DNA of 64,000 nucleotides from contig NC_083409.1 in NCBI RefSeq assembly GCF_020745735.1, positions 11,224,820-11,288,819 on the forward strand, given 5' to 3'. The translations under genes and the position numbers were made by a program. Source of the stretch: Hemiscyllium ocellatum. Taxonomy: Eukaryota. Each line of letters begins with the position of its first letter. Within the stretch, counting starts at the first letter, position 1. Under the pieces are notes generated by a model. It searched no databases and was not told the origin of the DNA. It saw only the letters and a list, made by a program, of their open reading frames with translations. Positions 230-35,459 of this stretch are shown here, one piece after another.

Positions 230-1780
230 GACCGGACGGACCACAGGCATCGACTAGACACCGAAAAGACAATGACAGAAAACAGCCCTGTCTACCTGCT
301 CATCCTCCTTACTGACATCTGGAGCTAGTGCCAAATTCAGGAAAGCTGTCTCAAGATGACTCAAGCAACAGCCTGACACTGTCATACTCACAGAACATAA
401 GACAATGTCCCAGACACTGCCATCACTGTCCCTGCATGTGTCCTGTCCCACCAGAAAGGCAGACCCAGCAGAGCTGATGACACAGTGGTTCTACAGCCAG
501 AAGGGAGTTACCCTGGAAGTCTCAAAGTTGGCTCTGGACCTCATGACACCAGGTTAAACATGGGCGTGGAAACCTCCTGGTGATTACAAGGTATCTTGCT
601 CCCTCAGCATTGATCAGTCTCTCCTGGAAGTTGAACAACATTTAGAGGAAGCACTGAGGGTGATGACAGCAGAGAGTGTACTCTGGATGGGGGGTTTCAA
701 TGTCCACCACTGAGAGTGGCTCGGCAGCAGCATTACTGATCGAGCTGGTTGGTCCTCATGGATGTAGCTGAGGGACTGGCTGTGCAGCGGAACCAAAAAG
801 ATGGATAAAGATGCTTGACCCCATCCTCACCAATCATGTGGCTGTAGGTGCATCTTTCCTTGACAGTATTGGTAAGAGTGACCAGCACACAGTCCTTGTG
901 AAACAAATGTCTGACCTTCACATTGAGAATCCCCTCCATTTGTGTTGTGTGTACTATCACCGTGCTAAATAGACAGACTCCGAACAGATATTGCAATCAG
1001 GCAAACTTGTAAATGGGGATGATTGCCAAAGATTGCATAATGCTCAGCACTCTTCTCAACCCACAGATACTGAAGCAGTCCACATGCAAATGCACATATC
1101 TGGACAATATCCAGGTTTTGTCTGAGAAGTGACATTTCCCATTGGTGCCATGCAAATGCCAGCCAATCAATCCATCACCAATAAGAGACAAACTTAACAT
1201 CGCCCCTTGACAATCATGCTATTTACCATCCACTGAATCCCACTATCAAATTCTTGAGGTCCATTGACCAGAAACACAACTGGATTCACCAAAGAAACAC
1301 AGTGGTTACAAGAGCAAGTTAGAGGCTAGGAATACTGCATCCAGTAATTCACCTCCTGATCCCCAAAGCCTGTCATCAATCAGAAGTGTGAGCAAATACT
1401 CCCCACTTGCCTGGACAGGTGCAGCTCCAACAACATTCATAGATTGATAGTGTCACTGAGTCATACAGCACAGAAACAACCCTTAAGGCCAAACTTCTAC
1501 ATGCTGACCAGGTTTTCTGAAGTGAAATCATCTTATTTGCCTGCATTTCACACATATCCTTGAAACCTTTCCTATCTATGTCGATTGTATCCTATGTCTT
1601 TCTTATCCACTCAAAAAGCTTGATACCATCCAGAGCAAAGCAAACTCCTTGATTTGGCATCACATTCTCAAAACATCCAAACTCATCACCGTCACTGACA
1701 TCCATAGCAGCAGTGTGTATTATTGATAAAGATGCACTGCAGAAATTCATCACTGATTTCAGATAGCCCCTTCCAAACCA
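230..1780 (+). mobile_element. Decayed APE-type non-LTR element (non-CR1 family), internally deleted
   Basis: Remnants of ILTE, HRQDRPSR and WMGGFNVHH.EWLGS, plus a 3' region CCAGAGCAAAGCA...AGATGCACTGCAG also seen at ~44880-45130 and ~57040-57290. Clade not determined. Confidence 0.65.
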
Positions 1781-1940: not shown

Positions 1941-2529
1941 CAGATTTACAGCATCTGCAGTTCTTTTGGTTTCCCTCCAAACCCACGTTCACTTCCATTA
2001 GAACAAGAGCAGCAGATACATGGAACACTGTGAATGCAAGTTCCCCTCGAAAAAGCTTAGCATCCGGACTTGGAAATATGTCGCTGATTCCCTCAGACTT
2101 GCCTGGTGTTAAAATGCTGGCATTCTCTCCCCAACAGCATTGTGGGTCAACTTACGTCTTGTGACTATAGTCAAAAAGTCAGGTTCCCACCGCCTTCTCC
2201 AGGGCAACTAGCCAGGGTATAAAATTTGGCCCACCGGTGAAGCCCATTCCCACAAGTGAATATGCAAAACCAAATGAAGTGTTCCTCAGGAGGGGAGAGG
2301 GAATGTTCAGGATCCTGAACTCATTTCCCAGCCCAGGCAGTTTTGTCTCCCATGAATGAATGAGATGCAATTTGAAGCCCAGGTTCAGGGCAGTCTCACT
2401 CTGTGGACATGAGGTCTATAAGAGAGAATTGGAGATTGAGCTGTAAAGGAAAGATTTGCTGTTATGGGGAGAGAGAGGGGAGCAGTGGGATTTACTGGGT
2501 CATTCAAAGGCATGATGGGCTGAATTGCC

Positions 2530-3470
2530 TCCTCCTGTGTTGTCAGATTCCAGGGAGTGCAGATAGTTTACAGTTTTCTCCCGTCTCAGTAACAAACACC
2601 CAGCTGCTCCGAGCTCCTTCTTTCACTTCCTCTCTTGGTGAAGTTTCAACCTTACGATCTGACAGTCTTTGCGTTTATTATTATTTTTTACACTGGGGCT
2701 TCCTACTGTGGTCAGAATCTCTAATAATAAGTGTCCAATCAGTGACAATCACAGCAGCTAAGAGCAGTCAGGACTGAGGAGCCAGGCTCACTGGGAAACA
2801 CATTGGCAGAATCAAAGCCATCCTCTTCAGCTCCTGATATAAGCTCCATCCCTCTCCCTGAGTACTATCTGCTGCTCAACCAGACTCTTCACAACTTTGG
2901 CCTCCTCTTTGGGGCTGATTTGAGGCCCAAATCCTACACATCACAATTATCAGCCACTGAAAATCTCAACCATGTTTTTGTGACCATTCCAATGTTGTCC
3001 AGGCCCACATCACAGCCACTGGCTTCCTTAAACATCAGCTCATCCCAAACTCTGCTGTCTGTGTTCAAACTCACACCAAGTCCACCCCATACCCCTGCCC
3101 ACGCCTCCCCACCCCACCATGACCATCACAATCCTCACTGACTGACATAAGCTCCTGGTCCAGCAACACCTCGATATTCAAATTCTCATCCTTGTTCTCA
3201 ATCTGCTCCCTGTTCTTCCACCCTCCCTATCTCTGTGACCTCCTCCAAGCTGCCTCACTCAGTGTGATCAATAATCTTGGATATATGGCCCTCTGTTTCT
3301 TCATCCAAGTCATTGAGAAATATCGTGAAAAGCTGAGGTCCCAGCACAGATCCCTGGGAATACCACTACTCACATCTGGCTCATTGGAACACATGCACAT
3401 TATCCTTCCTCTCTGTCTCCTAGACAGACCCATTCCTGACCCAAGGCAAATGCATTTCTCAAATTCCATC
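2530..3470 (-). repeat. Inverted segmental duplicate of 26810-27712
   Basis: The reverse complement matches 26810-27712 across a unique block, an L2 fragment and a CR1 fragment, including the junctions between them. That points to a duplication rather than independent insertions. Confidence 0.9.
2540..2810. promoter_or_regulatory. Second (inverted) copy of the candidate EICE/E-box/CCAAT block
   Basis: CAGCTG at 2601-2606, TTTCACTTCCTC at 2621-2632, GTCCAATCAG near 2733. Confidence 0.5.
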
Positions 3471-24439: not shown

Positions 24440-26800
24440 ATTTTCATTGCTCTTTGTTCTTTGAACTGAGGAAGCTCAAAGGAACAGAGTGATCTTGGGT
24501 GCTTCTCCATTGATCAATGAATGTGGCAAGACAGGTTAACAGAGCAGTTAAGAAGGCATAGGGGACACTTGGCTTTGTCATGTCAGGTATCGGTTATAAA
24601 AGCAGGAGGAGATGTTGCAGTTAAGCAGAACATTGGTGAGGCCACAGCTGGAGCACTGTGTGCAGTTCAGGTCACCACACTGCAGGAAAGATGTGATTGC
24701 ACTGGATGGGGTGCAGAGGGGAATCACCAGGATGTTGTGTGGGATGGAACCTCTCAGTGATGAAGAGAAATTGGATCATCTCGGGTTGTTTTCTTCAGAG
24801 CAGAGAAGGTGGAGGGGCACCTGATCGAAGTGTATAAGGTGATGAGGGGAATGGACAGGGAGGAGAGAAAGCAGCTGTTCTCCTTCTTGGGAGGGTCAAT
24901 AACAAGTTGGTTCACATTCAATGTCAAAGATAGGAGGTTTCAAGATGTTTTGAGGAAAGTGTTTTTGACCCAGAGGATGGTGGGTGGTCTGGAATACACA
25001 GTCTGGGAAAGTAGTTGAGGTGGGAAACCTCACAAACTTTAAAAAGTACTTGGGTGAGCAGTTGAAATATCAGAACATTCAAGCTATGTGCCGCATGTTG
25101 GAAAGTGGGACTGGTGTAGGTTTAGTGTAGTTTGGCTGGTACACAGTTAATGGGCTGAAGGGCCTCTTCTATACTGTGTGATTTTATGATTCTGTCGTGG
25201 GTAGTTTCGGGCTCCTTATCTGAAGAAGGATGTTCTGGCTGTGGAAGGAGGGCAGCGAAGGTTTACCAGACTGATTCCTGGGAGGACAGCATTTAGATCT
25301 GATGAGAAACTGGATTTGTTAGGATTATATTCACTGGAGTTCAGAAATTTGAGAGGAAACACATTGAAACCTGTAAAATCCTAACAGGACAAGACCGGTA
25401 AGCACGGGAATTGTGTTCCTGATGACTGGAAAGTCCAGAACCAGGAATCACATTTTAAAGAAAAGGGAAAGGCCATTTCAGACTGAGATGAGGAGACATT
25501 TCTTTAGCCAGAGAGTGGGAAGCTAGTGGAATATTTTGTCACAGAAAGCAATTGAGCCCAAAATATTAAATGTTTTCAAGAAGGCGAAAGGGATTAAAGG
25601 TTATGGAGAAAAAGTGGGAACAGGAGACTAAGTTGGATGATCAGCCATGGTCATATTGACTGGCAGAGCTGACTTGAAGGGCTGAACGGCCTCCTCCTGC
25701 TCCTAGTTCCTCTGTTTCTATGTTTGAGAGGCTGTTCATAAACATGGAAACATATGGAATTATAGAGTCACAGAGTCATCGAGTCCTACAGCACAGGGAC
25801 AGGCCCTTTGGCCCAAACTGGACCGTGCTGAACAAAATATCCACCCACACTAACCCCATTTCCCTCCACTTGGCCCATTTCCTTCAAATTACATACTATC
25901 TATGTATTTGTCCAAATGCCTTTTAAATGTTGTTAATGTACCAGCCTCAATCACTTCAGCTGGCAGCTCATTCCATACGAGTACCACCCTCTGCGTAAAA
26001 ATGTTGCCCCTCAGGTTCCCGTTTATTCTAACCTTCAACTGATGCCCTCTAGTCCTTGATTCCCAAACCCTGGAACAAAGATTGAGTGCAGTCACCCTAT
26101 CCATGTCTCTGAAGATCTTATACACTTCTAAAAGATTCCCCTTTACTCTCCGACACTCTTCAGAAAAATGTCCTAGCTTGTCCAACCTCTCCCAAAAACT
26201 CAGATGTTGAAACCTGGCAACATCCTTGTAAATTTATTCTGCACTCTTTCCAGTTTAATAATATCCTTCATATAACAAGGTGACCAAAACTGAACACAAT
26301 ACTCCACGTGCAGCCTCACCAGCATCATGTACAATTGAAACATAACTTCCCACCTTCTACACCCAGTGCCCTGACTGATGACGGCCAGTGTGCCAAAAGC
26401 TTTCTTCACTGCCCTGTCTAACTGTGACTCAACTTTCAGGGAACTGTGCACCTGAACTCCGAGATCCCACTGTTCCACTACAGTCCTTATGGCCTTCCCA
26501 TTCACCATGAAACTCCTACCTTGATTTAACTTTCCAAAATGCAAGTCCTCATATTTATCTACATTAAACTCAATTTATCATTCCTTTTCCCACTTCCACA
26601 GCTGATCAAGGTCCTGTTACAATATCTGACAACCTTCCTCATTGTCCACAATACCAGCTAATGGAATGTCTTCTAAATCATTGATATTGATAACAAACAG
26701 TAATGAACCCAGCATCAATCCTGAGGCACTCCACTAGACTCAGGCCTCCAGTCTGACAAGTATCCTTCCACTATGTCCCTCTGCTTTCACCCATTCTCGC
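24440..26800. mobile_element. Three further CR1 3' fragments (24440-25190 +, 25200-25720 +, 25740-26800 -)
   Basis: Repeated LEHCVQF, FFSQRV and GHQLKVR remnants, each with a CR1 3' stem-loop. Confidence 0.8.
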
Positions 26801-26809
26801 CAGTTAGAG

Positions 26810-27712
26810 AAAAGTATTTATCTTTGGTCAGGAATTAGTTTGGAGTTAGGAGACAGAGAGGATGGATAATGTGTGTGCTCTCCAATGACTAAAATGTGGA
26901 TAGTGGTGTCCCCAGGGAACTGGGCCGGAACCTCAGCATTTCACGATATTTCTCAATGACTTGGATGAAAGAATAGACAGCCATATATCCAAGATTGTTG
27001 ACCACACTGAGTGAGGCAGTTTGGAGGAAGTTACAGAGATAGGGAGAGTGGAGGACAGGGAGGGACTTGAGAACAAGGATGAGAATTTGAAAATCGAGGT
27101 GTTGCTGGACCAGGAGCCAATGTAGGCACAGGGTGCAGGGGAATGGAGGAATGGGATTTGATGTGAGTTTGGATATGGGCAGCAGAATTTGGAATGAGCT
27201 GAAGGTTACGGAGGGCAGTGGCTGTGATGTGTGCAAGCACAACATTGGTATGGTCATGTTTGGAGTTCCATACACATGACAGAGATTTTCAGTGGCTGAT
27301 CTTTGTGAGATGGAGGGTATGGTGCTCAGATCGGCCCCAAAGATGAGGCCAAGTTTGTAAAGAGTCTGGTTGAGCAGCAGATAGTGCTCAGGGAGAGGGA
27401 AGGAGTTTCTACCAGGATCTGAAGGGGATGGCTTTGATCTTCCCAATGTGTTTCCCAGTGAGCCTGGCTCCTCAGTCCTGACTGCTCTTAGCTGCTGTGA
27501 TTGTCACTGATTGGACATTTATTATTAGAGGTTCTGACCACAGCAGAAAGCCCCAGTGTAAAAAATAACTGCAAAGACTGTCAGAGCACAAGGTTGAAAC
27601 TTCACCAAAAGAGGAAGTGAAAGAAGGAGCTCGGAGCAGCTGGGTGTTTGTTACTGAGATGGGAGAAAACTGTGAACCATCTGCACTCCCTGGAACCTGA
27701 CAGCACAGGAGG
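26810..27712 (+). repeat. Inverted segmental duplicate of 2530-3470, about 5 kb upstream of V
   Basis: As above. For example, GAGGAAGTGAAAGAAGGAGCTCGGAGCAGCTGGGTGTTTGTTACTGAGA here is the exact reverse complement of sequence at about 2585-2633. Confidence 0.9.
27440..27710. promoter_or_regulatory. Candidate B-cell enhancer/promoter block (EICE + E-box + forkhead-like + CCAAT)
   Basis: GAGGAAGTGAAA at 27611-27622 fits the ETS-IRF composite GGAAnnGAAA. CAGCTG, TGTTTGT and CTGATTGGAC (inverted CCAAT) are also present. All are unchanged in the inverted copy at 2540-2810. Confidence 0.5.
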
Positions 27713-27869
27713 CTGGTTCTGGGATTTTTCTTTTCAGAAACAGCACAGTGATGGGAAAAAGGACAGTCACTCTCTCACAAACACGCACGCCTGTACTCGG
27801 CGATCAGAAACAGAATCCAGCAGCAGCTCTGTCTCCAAGCTGTGAAACCTGCACAGAATTGTTCCTTCA

Positions 27870-28410
27870 TTCAGTTTTTAACTGGCAGGATAGACCAAGC
27901 AGGGGAGGCAACTCAGTGGTGTGTGTAGTCGGAAAGGGATTGCCCTGGGAGTCCTCACCATTAACTATGGAACCCATGAAGCCTCATGACAGCAGGTCAA
28001 ACATGGGGAAGGAAACCTCCTGCTGATTACCACATAGCACCGCCCTCCCCTCCAACCTCAACTGAGCAGTCAGTCCTCCTCCATGTTGAACAACACTTGG
28101 AGGGAGCACTGAGGGAGGGAATGATGCAGGATATACTCTGAGTAAGGGGTTTCAAAGTCCACCATCAAGACCTGCTCAGAAGCATCATTGCTGAGCAAGG
28201 TGGTCACGCTCCACCTAATTCAGCTGCTCGACTGGACCTGGGGCAGGTGGTGAGGGAACCAACAAGAGGGAAAAACATACTCACTATCACCCTCACCAAC
28301 CTGCCTGCTGTTGGTGTATCTGTCCATGACAGTATCAGTAAGGGTGACAACTGCACAGTCCGTGTGGAGACAAAATCCCATCTTCACATTGAGATTACCT
28401 TGCATTTTGT
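27870..28410 (+). mobile_element. Second APE fragment of the same non-LTR family as 230-1000
   Basis: WQDRPSRGG, YRPPL and VVREPTRGKNILTITLTNLP...DSISKGDNCTVRVETK. Confidence 0.7.
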
Positions 28411-29289
28411 TGGACAAAAGATATGGGATGTCAGGAAGAATGTTTTCTTTAGCAGCAATTGGTAATGACTTGGAAGTTAGTGCCCATTCAGGTGAGGCAG
28501 GTGAAGACACTCAGTTATTGCAATGGCAGATTGGATGGGCTCTTGATGGAAATAAACCTGCAAGGCTCTGGGGGTCGAGTCGGGGAGGGGGTGGGACTGA
28601 CTGGATTGCTCCATGAAATGACAGCATTTACACACTTAGTCTCACCTTTACACAAAGACTGGGAGAAACAGGCAAACCAGTTCACAGAAGTGTTTTCTCA
28701 AGCAAAACACTCTTGAACCAACTCAGAGAACACACCAGTCTAGATTTACCAGAATAAATCAGCAAACCAATGGCAAGGGAACAGCGAACCAAAAGTGATG
28801 AAACTGAACAGTATATTCAAGAGCACAAACGACGAGAGAGGGAGGGATGAATGGCAGGAGGGCAGAGAGGATACTCTCGGGGTCTGAAGGCTCTGCTGTC
28901 AATGGTGGGATGGAGGAAGCAGCAATGGGCAGGAGACCAGAGACAGAAGGTGGAATGGGGAGGGAGGGAATGTGAGTCTACAGCAGGACACAGATTGAGG
29001 GAGGAGGGAGGCCATGGAGGCAATTGGCTGGCAGTGAGGTCAGATTCTGGAACAACTGTAGTTGTAAGACAGGGAAGGGACCACTCCACATCAGACAAGT
29101 TGGGGTTTATGGAATGTGGCTTCATGAAGCTGGGAGAGGACATTGAAATCATAGAGTCAGGAGGTGGGATAAGCAGGAATTGGGGTTTCTGTGGTCAAGA
29201 GGCTGAGGTAATGCAGAGACAAACAATGTTGTGCAGATTGAAATAAGAGACCTACGTAATGGACAGGATGTGGTGTTACAGCTCAGGTA

Positions 29290-30870: not shown

Positions 30871-31369
30871 AGAATCCAATGCATCGTGGACACCATGGTG
30901 GGTGTGGGGTTCAGTTTCTTTCTGTTGTAACTGTGTGATGGACAACCCTCATCCCAGTAAAACACCCTGACTCAGAGACTGATCATGGAAGGGGAAGGAG
31001 AGAGGAAGGGATTGGAACATGATGTGAATGAACAGGATGGGTCAGTGGGTTAGAGCCTGTCCTGCCCCTCCAACTCACACTGATGGCCTGAGGATCTCCT
31101 CTCTCTGCTGGACCTTCGTGGAATGAGGTTTGTGTCCAAACCAGTCCCCAGTGAGAATAGGCCAACAGCACAAAACTGCCTTTCATTTAACAAGAATCTG
31201 TCCATCTTCCTGAGAGATACCAAAACCTGGTCAATGTGGAAATGGACCTTTACTCCAGGAGAAGACATGATTCTGGGGTCAAGGGTTAACATCCATTTGT
31301 GGGACAGAGCAGAGAGAGATTTATCCTGAATTCAACTGTCACCACCTGGGACACTGTGAGAAAGAAAAA

Positions 31370-32675: not shown

Positions 32676-32772
32676 GAGGAAGTGTGAGGGGCTGACGTGG
32701 CTCTCTCTGCCTGATGCCATTTACATACTGAGGAACACCCAGTCAGACTCTCACAGGCTGCAGCTTTATAAA
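32676..32772 (+). promoter_or_regulatory. Ig light-chain V promoter: PU-box, CRE-like half site, variant octamer, TATA
   Basis: GAGGAAGT at 32676-32683, TGACGT at 32693-32698, ATTTACAT at 32719-32726 (one mismatch to the Ig octamer ATTTGCAT) and TATAAA at 32767-32772, all 60-160 bp upstream of the leader ATG. This layout is typical of Ig light-chain promoters. Function is inferred. Confidence 0.7.
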
Positions 32773-32832: not shown

Positions 32833-32881
32833 ATGATTTCACACATCCAGCTGATCTGGCCCCTGGCATTCTGTGTCGCAG
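32833..32881 (+). CDS. IGKV: Ig kappa-type light chain leader exon (L1), MISHIQLIWPLAFCVA(G)
   Basis: ATG in a CACCATG context, 16 mostly hydrophobic codons plus 1 nt, then a GT donor at 32882 (G|GTACAA). The phase-1 intron ends at CCCTCAG (33067) and joins in frame to [10 protein letters not shown]. Confidence 0.92.
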
Positions 32882-33067
32882 GTACAAATCTCTCTCCTTC
32901 CACCTTGAATCTTTAGCTGCTCTCCATTTCACTCCAATTCCACTGACTTGTGATTGAAGGGAAAATGCTGAAACCAGAGGAATGCTCAGTGTCTCCAACA
33001 ATCTCTCATTTGACAGGCTCTTTCTGTGACAGTTCTGACTTCACTGTGTTTCTCTCTGACCCCTCAG

Positions 33068-33364
33068 GTATCAGTGGGGACATCATCATGACCCAGTCTC
33101 CCCCGGTGCTGTCAGTGGGACTGGGCCAGACCGCAACACTCACCTGTACGGCCAGTCAATATGTTAGCAATGAGCTTTCCTGGTACCAGCAGCGAGAAGG
33201 TCAGAAACCCTCTCTCCTGATCTATGCTGCAACAAATCGATTCACAGGAGTCTCCGAGCGATTCACCGGCAGTGGATCAGGGACCAGTTTCACCCTGACA
33301 ATCAGCAATGTTCAGAATGAGGATGTCGCTGACTATTACTGTATGCAGGATTACAGCTGGCCTT
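33068..33364 (+). CDS. IGKV: Ig kappa-type (shark NS4/type III-like) V exon, germline unrearranged, open frame
   Basis: Translates (G)[98 protein letters not shown]. Both canonical Cys, the WYQQ and DYYC motifs, a kappa-length CDR2 and a 12-RSS are present. The isotype call rests on recalled similarity to shark NS4. Confidence 0.97.
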
Positions 33365-33392
33365 CACAGTGATACAGAGCCGTACAAAAACC
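33365..33392 (+). other. Recombination signal sequence, 12-bp spacer
   Basis: CACAGTG (33365-33371) + ATACAGAGCCGT (12 nt) + ACAAAAACC (33384-33392). Heptamer and nonamer both match consensus exactly. A V with a 12-RSS is the kappa configuration. Confidence 0.98.
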
Positions 33393-35459
33393 TCAAAGCA
33401 CACAGAATCACCTCCTGCACTGACACATGCACGGTTATATAAAATGCATAATAATGGACACACAGCCCCACTGCCTGAACTGTCATATCCCACAGTTAGA
33501 TCTAAATGAAACTGCACAAATTACCCCATGCTGGGATTGTCACTGTCCACGATACACTCCAGTCCCTGTGGTGTCTCAACGCTCACTAAAGGCCTCAAGC
33601 TTCCCTCTTCCACTCCATGGCCACATGTGAAGAACAGCTGCAAGATTTAACAATGAAAAATAAAGTTCACAACCTCGAGGCAGAGATTGTTGAAGGTGTT
33701 AGTGGGAAGCTGCAGTGAATGAAATGGTTGATTGAGGAGCACTGTGTCTCAAAGGGTGTCCAGCTGTATCTCTTTAGTTCCATTGCCCCCTTTAAGCAGC
33801 AAGATAAAAGTCAGTAAGTTTTACTCACCGTGTGGAGGAGCTCTGTCCATTTGCAGCCTGTGGTCCCATTCCTACAGCATGGAGTGAAATCAGTGAGTAG
33901 CCTCCTGCCAGTCTCAGGGTGACATTTGATCTCCTTACTGATCAAGAACCTATCTGTCTCTGTTTTAAATACTCTCAACATCTTGGCATCCATAGAGCTC
34001 TGTGACAATGAATTCCGCAGATTCACCACCATGTGGCTGAAGAAATGCCTCCTTATCTCAGTTCTGACGGATCACTCTGAGGCTGTGCCTTCAGGCCCGA
34101 GTTTCTTCTATTCGTGGAAACACCTTCTCCATGTTCTCCAGGCCTCTCAATATTCTGTAGTTTCAATAAGATTCCCCCCTCATCTTTCTAAACACAATTG
34201 CATACAGATCCAGAATCCTCAACCACTCTTTATATGACACCCCCTTCATTCCCAGGATCATTCTTATTCTTTCTCACTTTTTCCTCTGGACCCTCTCCAA
34301 TGACAGCACATCCTTCCTTAATAAGGAGACCAAAATTCCAAATGTGGTCTGATCAAAGACTTATACAAACGCAGCAGTACACCTCTGACGTTAAAGTTAA
34401 TGCTAACATTGTAACTGCCTTTCAAACAGCCAATGATGAACCTGCACGTTAACCTTCAGAGAAACCTGAGCAAGGACTCCCAATTCTCTTTGTGCTTCAG
34501 ATTTCTGAAATCTTTCCTCACTTAGAAAAGTCTGTGCCTCTATTCTTCCCACCAAAGTATCTAGCCTCACAAGTCCCCGCACTGTACTCCACCTGCCACT
34601 TCTTTGCACATTCTCCCAGCCTGACCAAGTCCTTCTGCAATCTCCCCCACTTCCTCAACTCCACCTGTCCTTTCACCAATTTTTGTGTCATCTACAAACA
34701 TATGAACAATATCTTCAGTTCCTTATCCAGATTGTTAATGGATAATGTGAATAGTTGTGGTCCCAACACAGATCCCTGCGGATCGCCACAAAGCACCACC
34801 AGCCATCCAGAAAAAAAATCCCTTTGTCCCTACTCTCGCCTTTGTGCCGGGCAGCCAATCCTCTACAATTCGCAGTGCCTTGCTCCTGACAGCATGGGCT
34901 CTGATTTGACTTAGCAGTCTCCTTTAATGTACCCTGTCAAAGGCCTGGTGGAAATCCAAATGGATCACATCCACTGGCTCTCCTTTGTCTAACTCACTTG
35001 TTACCTCCTCAAAGATTTCTAACAGATTTATCAGGCATGCCTCCCTTTGATGAAGCTGTGCTAACTCAGCCCAATTTTACCAGGCTGCAATTTTACCAGG
35101 CTTACAGGTGAGATTCCAAATACCTGCAATCTCACCCTTAAGTAGACCTCTAAAATCTTACCAATGACTGAGGTCAGGCTAACCAGCTTATAATGTCCCA
35201 TCTCTGCCTCCCTCCTTTCTTAAACAGGGATGTTACATTCACTATTTTCCAGTCTTCTGGGACCACCCCAACTCCAGTGATTTCTGAAAGATCACAGCCA
35301 ATGGCCCTACAATTACCTTAGCTATCTCCATCAGAACTCTGGCGTGTAGTCCATCGGGTCTGAATGATTTATCCACCTTCAGACCTTTCAGCTGCCTCAA
35401 CCCCTCCACCTTAGTGATGCCCTCTCCACTCGCTTCTGCTCCCAACTCTCTTGAAGGTC

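Follow-up and report, generated by a model that had tools for sequence, protein, structure and literature searches.

Kappa light-chain cluster of the window

The stretch of DNA studied here (64 kb, hereafter the window) carries an immunoglobulin (Ig) light-chain cluster of the kappa type, represented by a V gene and by the open-frame part of a C-kappa exon on the same strand (Table 1). Identity of the V domain is 92% with a V-set protein of Chiloscyllium punctatum, 87% with Hemiscyllium, and 86% with the nurse shark, which points to an orectolobiform, bamboo-shark-like genome. Pattern search detected no J segment in this cluster. Upstream of the V gene, at a distance given as about 5 kb in a preliminary description of this DNA and measured here as 5.1 kb (from 27712 to the leader at 32833), is found a non-coding block (copy A), of which self-comparison reveals one further, inverted copy in the 64-kb window (copy B). 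The two copies form a head-to-head pair, 24.6 kb apart. Copy B faces the left end of the window, beyond which any V gene for it would lie, and no second V or C that could pair with it is present in the window. Since the cluster downstream of copy A lacks a J segment, copy A may be left without a functional gene to serve.

The V promoter carries an octamer variant, ATTTACAT (32719-32726), and a TATAAA sequence (32767-32772). Perfect ATTTGCAT sequences are found three times in the window, at 1084, 1150, and 60767, that is, at chance frequency and away from the V promoter. The two perfect octamers at 1084-1157 (minus strand) were set aside, being situated in repeat-like DNA away from any V gene. 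A protein of 89 aa deposited as a hypothetical protein of Salmonella enterica (P0015, from a 299-bp contig) is 76% identical to the V domain of the window; it probably corresponds to vertebrate DNA contaminating a bacterial assembly.

Two other non-coding islands of the cluster are as well conserved as the block when compared with L001, one of the C. punctatum contigs described below. The first one (30980-31263), located 1.6-1.85 kb 5' of the V leader, is 90.5% identical to L001:8367-8651 and about 75% identical to contigs L002 and L003. The second one (33688-33924) is 92-93% identical to L001:11303-11539 and L002:3992-4151, and 84% identical to L003:10652-10882. It starts just 3' of the missing J, at the start of the J-C intron. 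In mammals, the kappa intronic enhancer sits at the start of the J-C intron.

Table 1. Features of the window and copies of the conserved block in C. punctatum contigs (positions with the prefix L001 or L003 refer to these contigs; EICE, PU.1(Spi)/IRF composite element).
Feature	Position	Strand	Remarks
Kappa-type V gene	32833..33392	+	Leader 32833-32881, V exon 33068-33364, perfect 12-spacer RSS 33365-33392
C-kappa exon (open-frame part), same cluster	41195..41443	+	82% identical to L003:14034-14961
Conserved block, copy A	27447..27712	+	266 bp, non-coding; V gene 5.1 kb downstream, on this strand
Conserved block, copy B (inverted)	2531..2802	-	Self-comparison and alignment; EICE at 2621-2630
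Deeply conserved core of the block	27518..27659	+	Identity with L003a 86-88% (LINE part, 73%; p = 0.0008-0.003)
CCAAT/NF-Y-like CTGATTGGAC	27507..27516	-	Inside the 75-bp perfect run; copies A, B, and L001 only
MEF2-like TTATTATTAG	27519..27528	+	A, B, and L001 exact; L003a and L003b 9/10
RUNX-type core (ACCACA on the plus strand)	27537..27542	-	4/5 copies
EICE GAGGAAGTGAAA, preceded by an A-tract (AAAAGAGGAAGTGAAAG)	27611..27622	+	Pattern match; intact in 4/5 copies
E-box CAGCTG	27637..27642		14 bp after the EICE; 5/5 copies
TGTTTGT (forkhead-like), within conserved GTTTGTTACTGAGA	27645..27651	+	Exact in 4/5 copies; GTTTCTT in L003b
Decayed LINE (CR1/L2-type) ORF2 C-terminal remnant abutting copy A	26804..27446	-	185-aa ORF, LHWL..Q..DF.IL...K.....PYL motif
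Same LINE remnant beside copy B	2803..3463	+	80-81% identical to 26804-27446
Older right flank of the block	27713..27951	+	Common to L003b; replaced by transposon-like insertions in B/L003a and L001 (alignment A2)
True transposons flanking the block region	26400-26787 and 27952-28436		Used in the word-depth comparison
Block copy L001	L001:3356-3615	+	92.5-93% identical to A; 6.4 kb 5' of a same-strand V gene
Block copy L003a	L003:4939-5296	+	77-80% identical to A; complete V-C gene model 4.7 kb downstream
Block copy L003b	L003:1362-991	-	Head to head with L003a, 3.6 kb away

Copies of the block outside the window

Contigs of C. punctatum were found by using the V exon as a protein query and then the coding loci of its homologues, and the block was located on them by BLAST. 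Matches were obtained at three places, one on contig L001 and two on contig L003 (copies L003a and L003b); contigs L002 and L004 have too little upstream DNA and stayed outside the upstream comparison. A same-strand kappa V leader lies 4.7-6.4 kb downstream of the block in the three copies for which this can be tested (A, 5.1 kb; L001, 6.4 kb; L003a, 4.7 kb), and all five copies seen have a kappa-cluster context. The distance between block and V differs from one cluster to another through transposon insertions. The idea that the block would be found beside Ig clusters is therefore borne out in three of three testable copies, within a small sample of copies that were picked through V genes.

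The block was also searched for in sequencing runs of coded organisms. Runs of organisms A, B, and C contain 31-52% of its sampled 31-mers, and those of organisms D, E, and F contain 7-17%. Contigs bearing the block, placed at a threshold of 80% likeness or more, come from three to four coded organisms, a cross-species distribution that rests mainly on the run labels, and the window species and C. punctatum may be one species or very close to each other. In organism D, a 319-nt contig crosses the boundary between the block and its left neighbor with 90.7% identity. A scan of metagenomes with a 32-mer of the invariant run gave no match, as expected for shark DNA.

A decayed LINE as a neutral yardstick

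On its left side, the block adjoins a decayed retrotransposon. The LHWL..Q..DF.IL motif carried by this remnant (26804-27446) is presumably the C-terminus of ORF2 of a CR1/L2-type LINE. An exhaustive protein search returned a single weak match (E = 5.5e-4), to a repeat protein having the same motif; no Pfam family was assigned and a length-limited protein search gave no match. The frame of 185 codons (26889-27446, minus strand) is open in copy A and broken in copy B, and its persistence in a decayed remnant is probably a chance survival. Because this frame points away from the block, the end of the dead LINE insertion that borders the block is the 5'-truncated one. This LINE/block junction is also found beside copy B, in L001, in both L003 copies, and in one contig of organism D. 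Hence, the association of remnant and block predates the split of these copies, and a local neutral rate can be read from the remnant.

The two copies of the window were aligned using MAFFT (26804-27712, plus strand, against the reverse complement of 2531-3463). Their homology covers about 0.9 kb, made up of the LINE remnant and the block, and ends at 27712/2531 and at 26804/3463; copies A and B are thus not whole inverted duplicates of a cluster. In the block, 251 of 266 positions match (94.4%), with one indel of 6 bp at 27569 and perfect runs at 27443-27517 (75 bp) and 27610-27659 (50 bp). In the LINE part (26804-27446), 510 of 629 positions match (81.1%; 80.3% in the five-copy alignment presented below). 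The preliminary description had estimated by eye a block of about 270 bp at 90% identity or more, perfect runs of about 50 and 75 bp, and an adjoining repeat-derived part at about 80%. The alignment agrees with these estimates and confirms the excess of identity inside the block as compared to outside (94.4% vs. 80-81%; Fisher p about 3e-8 to 6e-8).

The contrast persists when only well-aligned LINE segments are used (divergence of 15.4% in the LINE vs. 5.6% in the block, p = 8e-5), and CpG content fails to account for it. At the LINE rate, a perfect run of at least 71 bp in 266 sites has a probability of about 1.5e-5; given 16 events, the probability of two runs of at least 71 and at least 50 bp is about 0.011. 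Finally, the ratio of transitions to transversions between A and B is 14:1 in the block vs. 39:26 in the LINE part (p = 0.015), the effect being weaker in the other two close pairs. A deficit of transversions is expected for factor-binding DNA (PMC5438547); that of the block would fit such DNA, for which it is only suggestive.

Conservation among five copies

Copies A, B, L001, L003a, and L003b were gathered in one alignment (A1), giving ten pairwise comparisons of the LINE part with the block. In all ten pairs, the block is more conserved than the LINE. Within the close trio, the margin is 11-14 points, with LINE and block identities of 80.3% and 94.4% for A-B, 81.8% and 92.5% for A-L001, and 80.8% and 92.8% for B-L001. 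When A, B, or L001 is compared with either L003 copy, the LINE part is at 0.71-0.73 and the block at 0.78-0.80 (L003a) or 0.77-0.78 (L003b); the whole-block excess in these deep comparisons is small, 5-7 points (p = 0.06-0.18). For the pair L003a-L003b, the values are 0.69 and 0.71. The block-LINE difference reaches significance in each of the three close pairs and also against L003a when positions 27518-27659 are considered.

This segment is the only stretch above the neutral level in the comparison with L003a (Table 1). Conservation over the five copies is maximal at 27520-27569 and 27600-27669, and the 50-bp run containing the EICE and the E-box remains at 0.90-0.92 identity with L003a. The 75-bp run, which includes the CCAAT motif, is at 0.67-0.73 in the deep comparisons, a neutral level, and is conserved only in the A/B/L001 subfamily. 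L003b is the most decayed of the five copies and is decayed throughout; judged from its sequence, it is a naturally broken copy, in other words a natural mutant. In the L003 comparison, the V exon (85%) and the C exon (82%) are better kept than the block (77-80%).

Such a pattern may arise with no function at all, if gene conversion among kappa clusters, or a low local mutation rate, preserved the uniformity of the block, its motifs being coincidental. The kappa clusters presumably form a large family, which makes conversion plausible. The excess is large only within A, B, and L001 and small between subfamilies, the raised identity begins about 90 bp inside the LINE remnant (27350-27446 is at 85-90% among A, B, and L001), and the high share of transitions could also denote young differences. 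In addition, should the species compared be very close, homogenisation of the family towards a consensus could be taken for cross-species conservation. However, A, B, and L001 are equidistant both in the LINE part and in the block, and the within-genome pair A-B is barely closer than the pairs formed with C. punctatum, which speaks against recent conversion between A and B as the source of their identity. The boundaries are the same in all three close pairs, and, with homology on both sides of the LINE junction, conversion would not be expected to halt there. Moreover, the part retained in L003a coincides with the cluster of sites described below, with EICE and E-box exact, and insertions are frequent at the edges of the block but excluded from its interior. 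We therefore find an origin by conversion or local mutation rate improbable. The earlier view of a selected or converted cis-element stands insofar as the block has diverged less than the neutral LINE; selection is not cleanly separable from concerted evolution.

Edges and copy number of the block

The right edge of the block is a hot spot for insertions (window 2500-2531, minus strand; L003:5297 onward; L001:3616 onward). Immediately after ...CACAGGAGG, copies B and L003a have one transposon-like insertion in common; at the same point, the insertion of L001 is a different one. The insertion shared by B and L003a indicates that this cluster sub-lineage is older than the copies themselves. Copy A and L003b retain the older flank, and their homology reaches rightward to 28631 (27072-28631 vs. 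L003:1644-71, 72%, BLAST). Altogether, three separate insertions, including the LINE on the left, are located at the edges of the block and none inside, a distribution that would fit a constrained interior.

The size of 266 bp and the sharp ends of the A/B comparison are also those that a dispersed short repeat would have, either a SINE- or MITE-like element or the end of a composite transposon caught in the kappa duplication unit. Summed over the block, word depth reaches 10-17 thousand in organism A, 20-38 thousand in organism B, and 10-21 thousand in organism C, that is, 2-10 times the value of both flanks in three organisms, which could mean extra copies elsewhere; these contig-based depths, which are not copy numbers, fit a block family of some hundreds of copies. 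Yet the true flanking transposons exceed the block 10-100 times in depth, and the block occurs just twice in 64 kb, a length in which genuine transposon families are present five times or more. Later insertions account for the sharp right end, as A and L003b are homologous on to 28631. Had the block been a neutral repeat, duplicated along with the LINE remnant, its decay should have equalled that of the remnant, which is not the case, and the context is a kappa cluster in five of the five copies seen. A dispersed repeat is thus highly improbable, and the description of the block as non-repeat, or at least low-copy, DNA is supported by its two copies in the window.

Neither a tRNA-like head nor terminal inverted repeats, a poly(A), or a LINE tail was found in the block itself. 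It has no match in Rfam at E <= 1, and its folding energy gives no signal relative to shuffled sequences (z = -0.02 for the plus strand and +0.21 for the minus strand). It contains no ORF of note and shows no similarity at the protein level. On these negative searches, an RNA gene, a tRNA-derived SINE, an inverted-repeat element, and a coding exon were rejected.

Compared with the preliminary description, it is new to take the adjoining LINE remnant as a neutral control within the sequence and to assign the durable part to 27518-27659 rather than to the CCAAT run. The naturally broken copy L003b and the pattern of insertions at the edges are also new.

Candidate binding sites in the block

All the motifs that had been named in the invariant runs are present in copies A and B. 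The ETS-IRF composite element GGAANNGAAA is matched by the EICE of copy A and, in copy B, at 2621-2630 (minus strand). In copy A, this EICE corresponds to an A-tract-flanked GGAA with GAAA two bases on. The sequence GAGGAAGTGAAAG is exact in four of the five copies, and L003b has GTGGAAATGAAGG at the EICE position. The spacing of 14 bp between EICE and E-box is fixed, without any indel, in all five. EICE, E-box, and RUNX core are intact in L003a, whose cluster has an intact V-C gene model. L003b is devoid of EICE, RUNX core, and CCAAT box, and ATTGG is gone from both L003 copies. The emphasis initially put on the CCAAT and forkhead-like motifs has to be reduced: both do occur in A and B, but CCAAT is kept only in A, B, and L001, and the "forkhead-like" motif is a mere 7-mer.

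Motif matches in the block are post hoc, and the EICE pattern occurs in the window at chance frequency (4 found for 4.05 expected). No kB-type site was found in the block with either strict or loose patterns, and motif searches of the block found neither an octamer nor a CTCF-type core.

Some of these features may also point to a cis-element of another nature, for example the promoter of an upstream germline or sterile transcript, a boundary or tether of head-to-head clusters, a silencer, or an element acting mainly on the targeting of somatic hypermutation and less on transcription. Conservation and linkage argue for such an element as much as for an enhancer, the blocks are arranged in head-to-head pairs (24.6 kb apart in the window and 3.6 kb apart in L003), and an NF-Y-type CCAAT box is typical of promoters. 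In DT40 cells, Ig enhancers having such motifs target hypermutation with little effect on transcription (PMC3972084). Against a promoter or a boundary, neither TATA, initiator, splice donor, nor CTCF-type core was found at the block, and CCAAT is lost in the divergent copies while EICE and E-box remain. As far as RNA is concerned, none of the runs on record as RNA contains the block (run screen); one contig labelled "RNA?" (X15) spans the LINE part and the block equally and gives no evidence of specific transcription. Among the contigs, to which this observation is restricted, no RNA contig starts or ends at the block, which also argues against a promoter. These other cis-elements, taken together, keep a small but real share of probability.

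A putative enhancer of kappa miniloci

The reading that we favor, with moderate confidence, is that the block would be a cluster-autonomous cis-regulatory element, most likely a B-cell enhancer. Counted for this reading are the excess of conservation over the LINE, the linkage to V in the three testable copies, the insertions confined to the edges, the likeness to Ig lambda enhancer sites, and the occurrence of the block in contigs of three DNA organisms and one further organism, with a summed word depth above that of both flanks. Loss of the EICE in L003b, a copy decayed throughout, and the intact sites of L003a beside an intact gene model are also counted for it. Counted against it are the presence of a block copy at a V cluster lacking J, the post hoc choice of motifs, the chance-level frequency of the EICE pattern, and the lack of kB site and octamer, as well as the equal conservation of the other islands and the better preservation of the V and C exons. 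The small excess of the whole block and the neutral level of the CCAAT run in deep comparisons, and the possible closeness of the species compared, are counted on the same side.

In this model, the block would be a module of each kappa V-(J)-C minilocus, located about 5 kb upstream of the V promoter. An ETS factor of the Spi family (PU.1/Spi-B type) would bind AAAGAGGAAGTG and recruit IRF4/8 to the adjoining GAAA, an E-protein (E2A/HEB) would occupy CAGCTG, 14 bp further on, and RUNX- and MEF2-type sites 70-95 bp upstream would join the complex. This complex would open the cluster and drive transcription from the V promoter, first germline and later at a high level, thereby licensing V-J joining in the cluster. 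The excess conservation of the block, its linkage and orientation with respect to V in three clusters, and the retention and fixed spacing of EICE and E-box are observed; binding of the factors, enhancer activity, and the link with recombination are what we infer from them.

Shark antibody genes are organized as many self-contained V-J-C clusters that rearrange autonomously. With a candidate of 140-270 bp containing two key sites that can be mutated, the accessibility of a cluster to the recombinase becomes testable. So do the choice of one cluster among very many (isotype or "cluster" exclusion) and the question of whether the control of light chains by PU.1/IRF4 and E2A is as old as the antibody system. 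The candidate block would also be of use in expression constructs, for shark or across species, as a small B-cell-specific control element. A broader proposal can be made, in which every kappa minilocus would have its own copy of an ancestral enhancer, the grammar of bird and mammalian Ig lambda enhancers would predate the split between cartilaginous and bony vertebrates, and each copy would serve both as a stochastic choice point, by which one cluster is rearranged and expressed and the others remain silent, and as an element directing somatic hypermutation to its cluster. Taken jointly, these propositions are speculative and we hold them to be doubtful.

Relationships with known light-chain enhancers

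The usual position of a light-chain enhancer is in the J-C intron or 3' of C; the shark block is upstream of V. In the mouse, the Ig kappa 3' enhancer is characterized by a PU.1/IRF4 composite element and the kappa intronic enhancer by E2A boxes. Like these enhancers, the shark block associates an ETS-IRF composite site with an E-protein box, next to a gene of the kappa type. It differs from them by its location upstream of V, by a composite site of the lambdaB type, and by the lack of a kB site.

No described Ig enhancer of any cartilaginous fish was found in the literature searched, which does not include many subscription papers. A review of fish immunoglobulins places promoters at V segments only and leaves enhancers unmentioned (PMC5192425). 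PU.1-family factors are known from a skate, according to a passage of this review (Anderson et al., 2001, cited in PMC5192425).

A close likeness in sites is with Ig lambda enhancers, those of the mouse (E-lambda2-4 and E-lambda3-1) comprising a PU.1-IRF4 site (lambdaB), a MEF2 site (lambdaA), and E-boxes, with homologous enhancers in human and chicken. In chicken, mouse, and human, these enhancers have conserved and mutation-sensitive E-box, NF-kB, MEF2, and PU.1-IRF4 sites, with, in mammals, a further E-box downstream of PU.1 (PMC3972084). The shark block presents, in this order, a MEF2-like site, a RUNX core, a PU.1/IRF composite site, and a downstream E-box, and its MEF2, PU.1/IRF, and E-box sites match the set reported as conserved in the three species (PMC3972084). 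The shark GGAAGTGAAA core, which follows an A-tract, is identical to lambdaB, as the PU.1 site is named in the Ig lambda2-4 enhancer of the mouse (PMC4872103). In both cases, the module is short (less than 300 bp in the shark) and linked to a light chain. In contrast, Ig lambda enhancers are 3' of C and the shark block is 5' of V. An NF-kB site was not found in the shark block, which does have a MEF2-like site, and the spacings are different (about 85 bp from MEF2-like site to EICE and 14 bp from EICE to E-box). Finally, there are one or two Ig lambda enhancers per locus but one shark block per V-J-C minilocus, and the likeness is in the sites, not in an aligned sequence.

Atlantic cod offers a parallel in terms of organization. 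Bengten et al. are said to have described, in 2000, cluster-type light-chain loci of this fish having enhancers in the intergenic DNA from C to V, reportedly active in reporter assays. Cod and shark belong to different lineages and the isotypes differ; the cod elements are active according to these reporter assays, whereas the shark block is a putative enhancer. Nevertheless, in both cases, the enhancer, a candidate in the shark, is that of a repeated V-J-C cluster and is located in the intergenic DNA between clusters.
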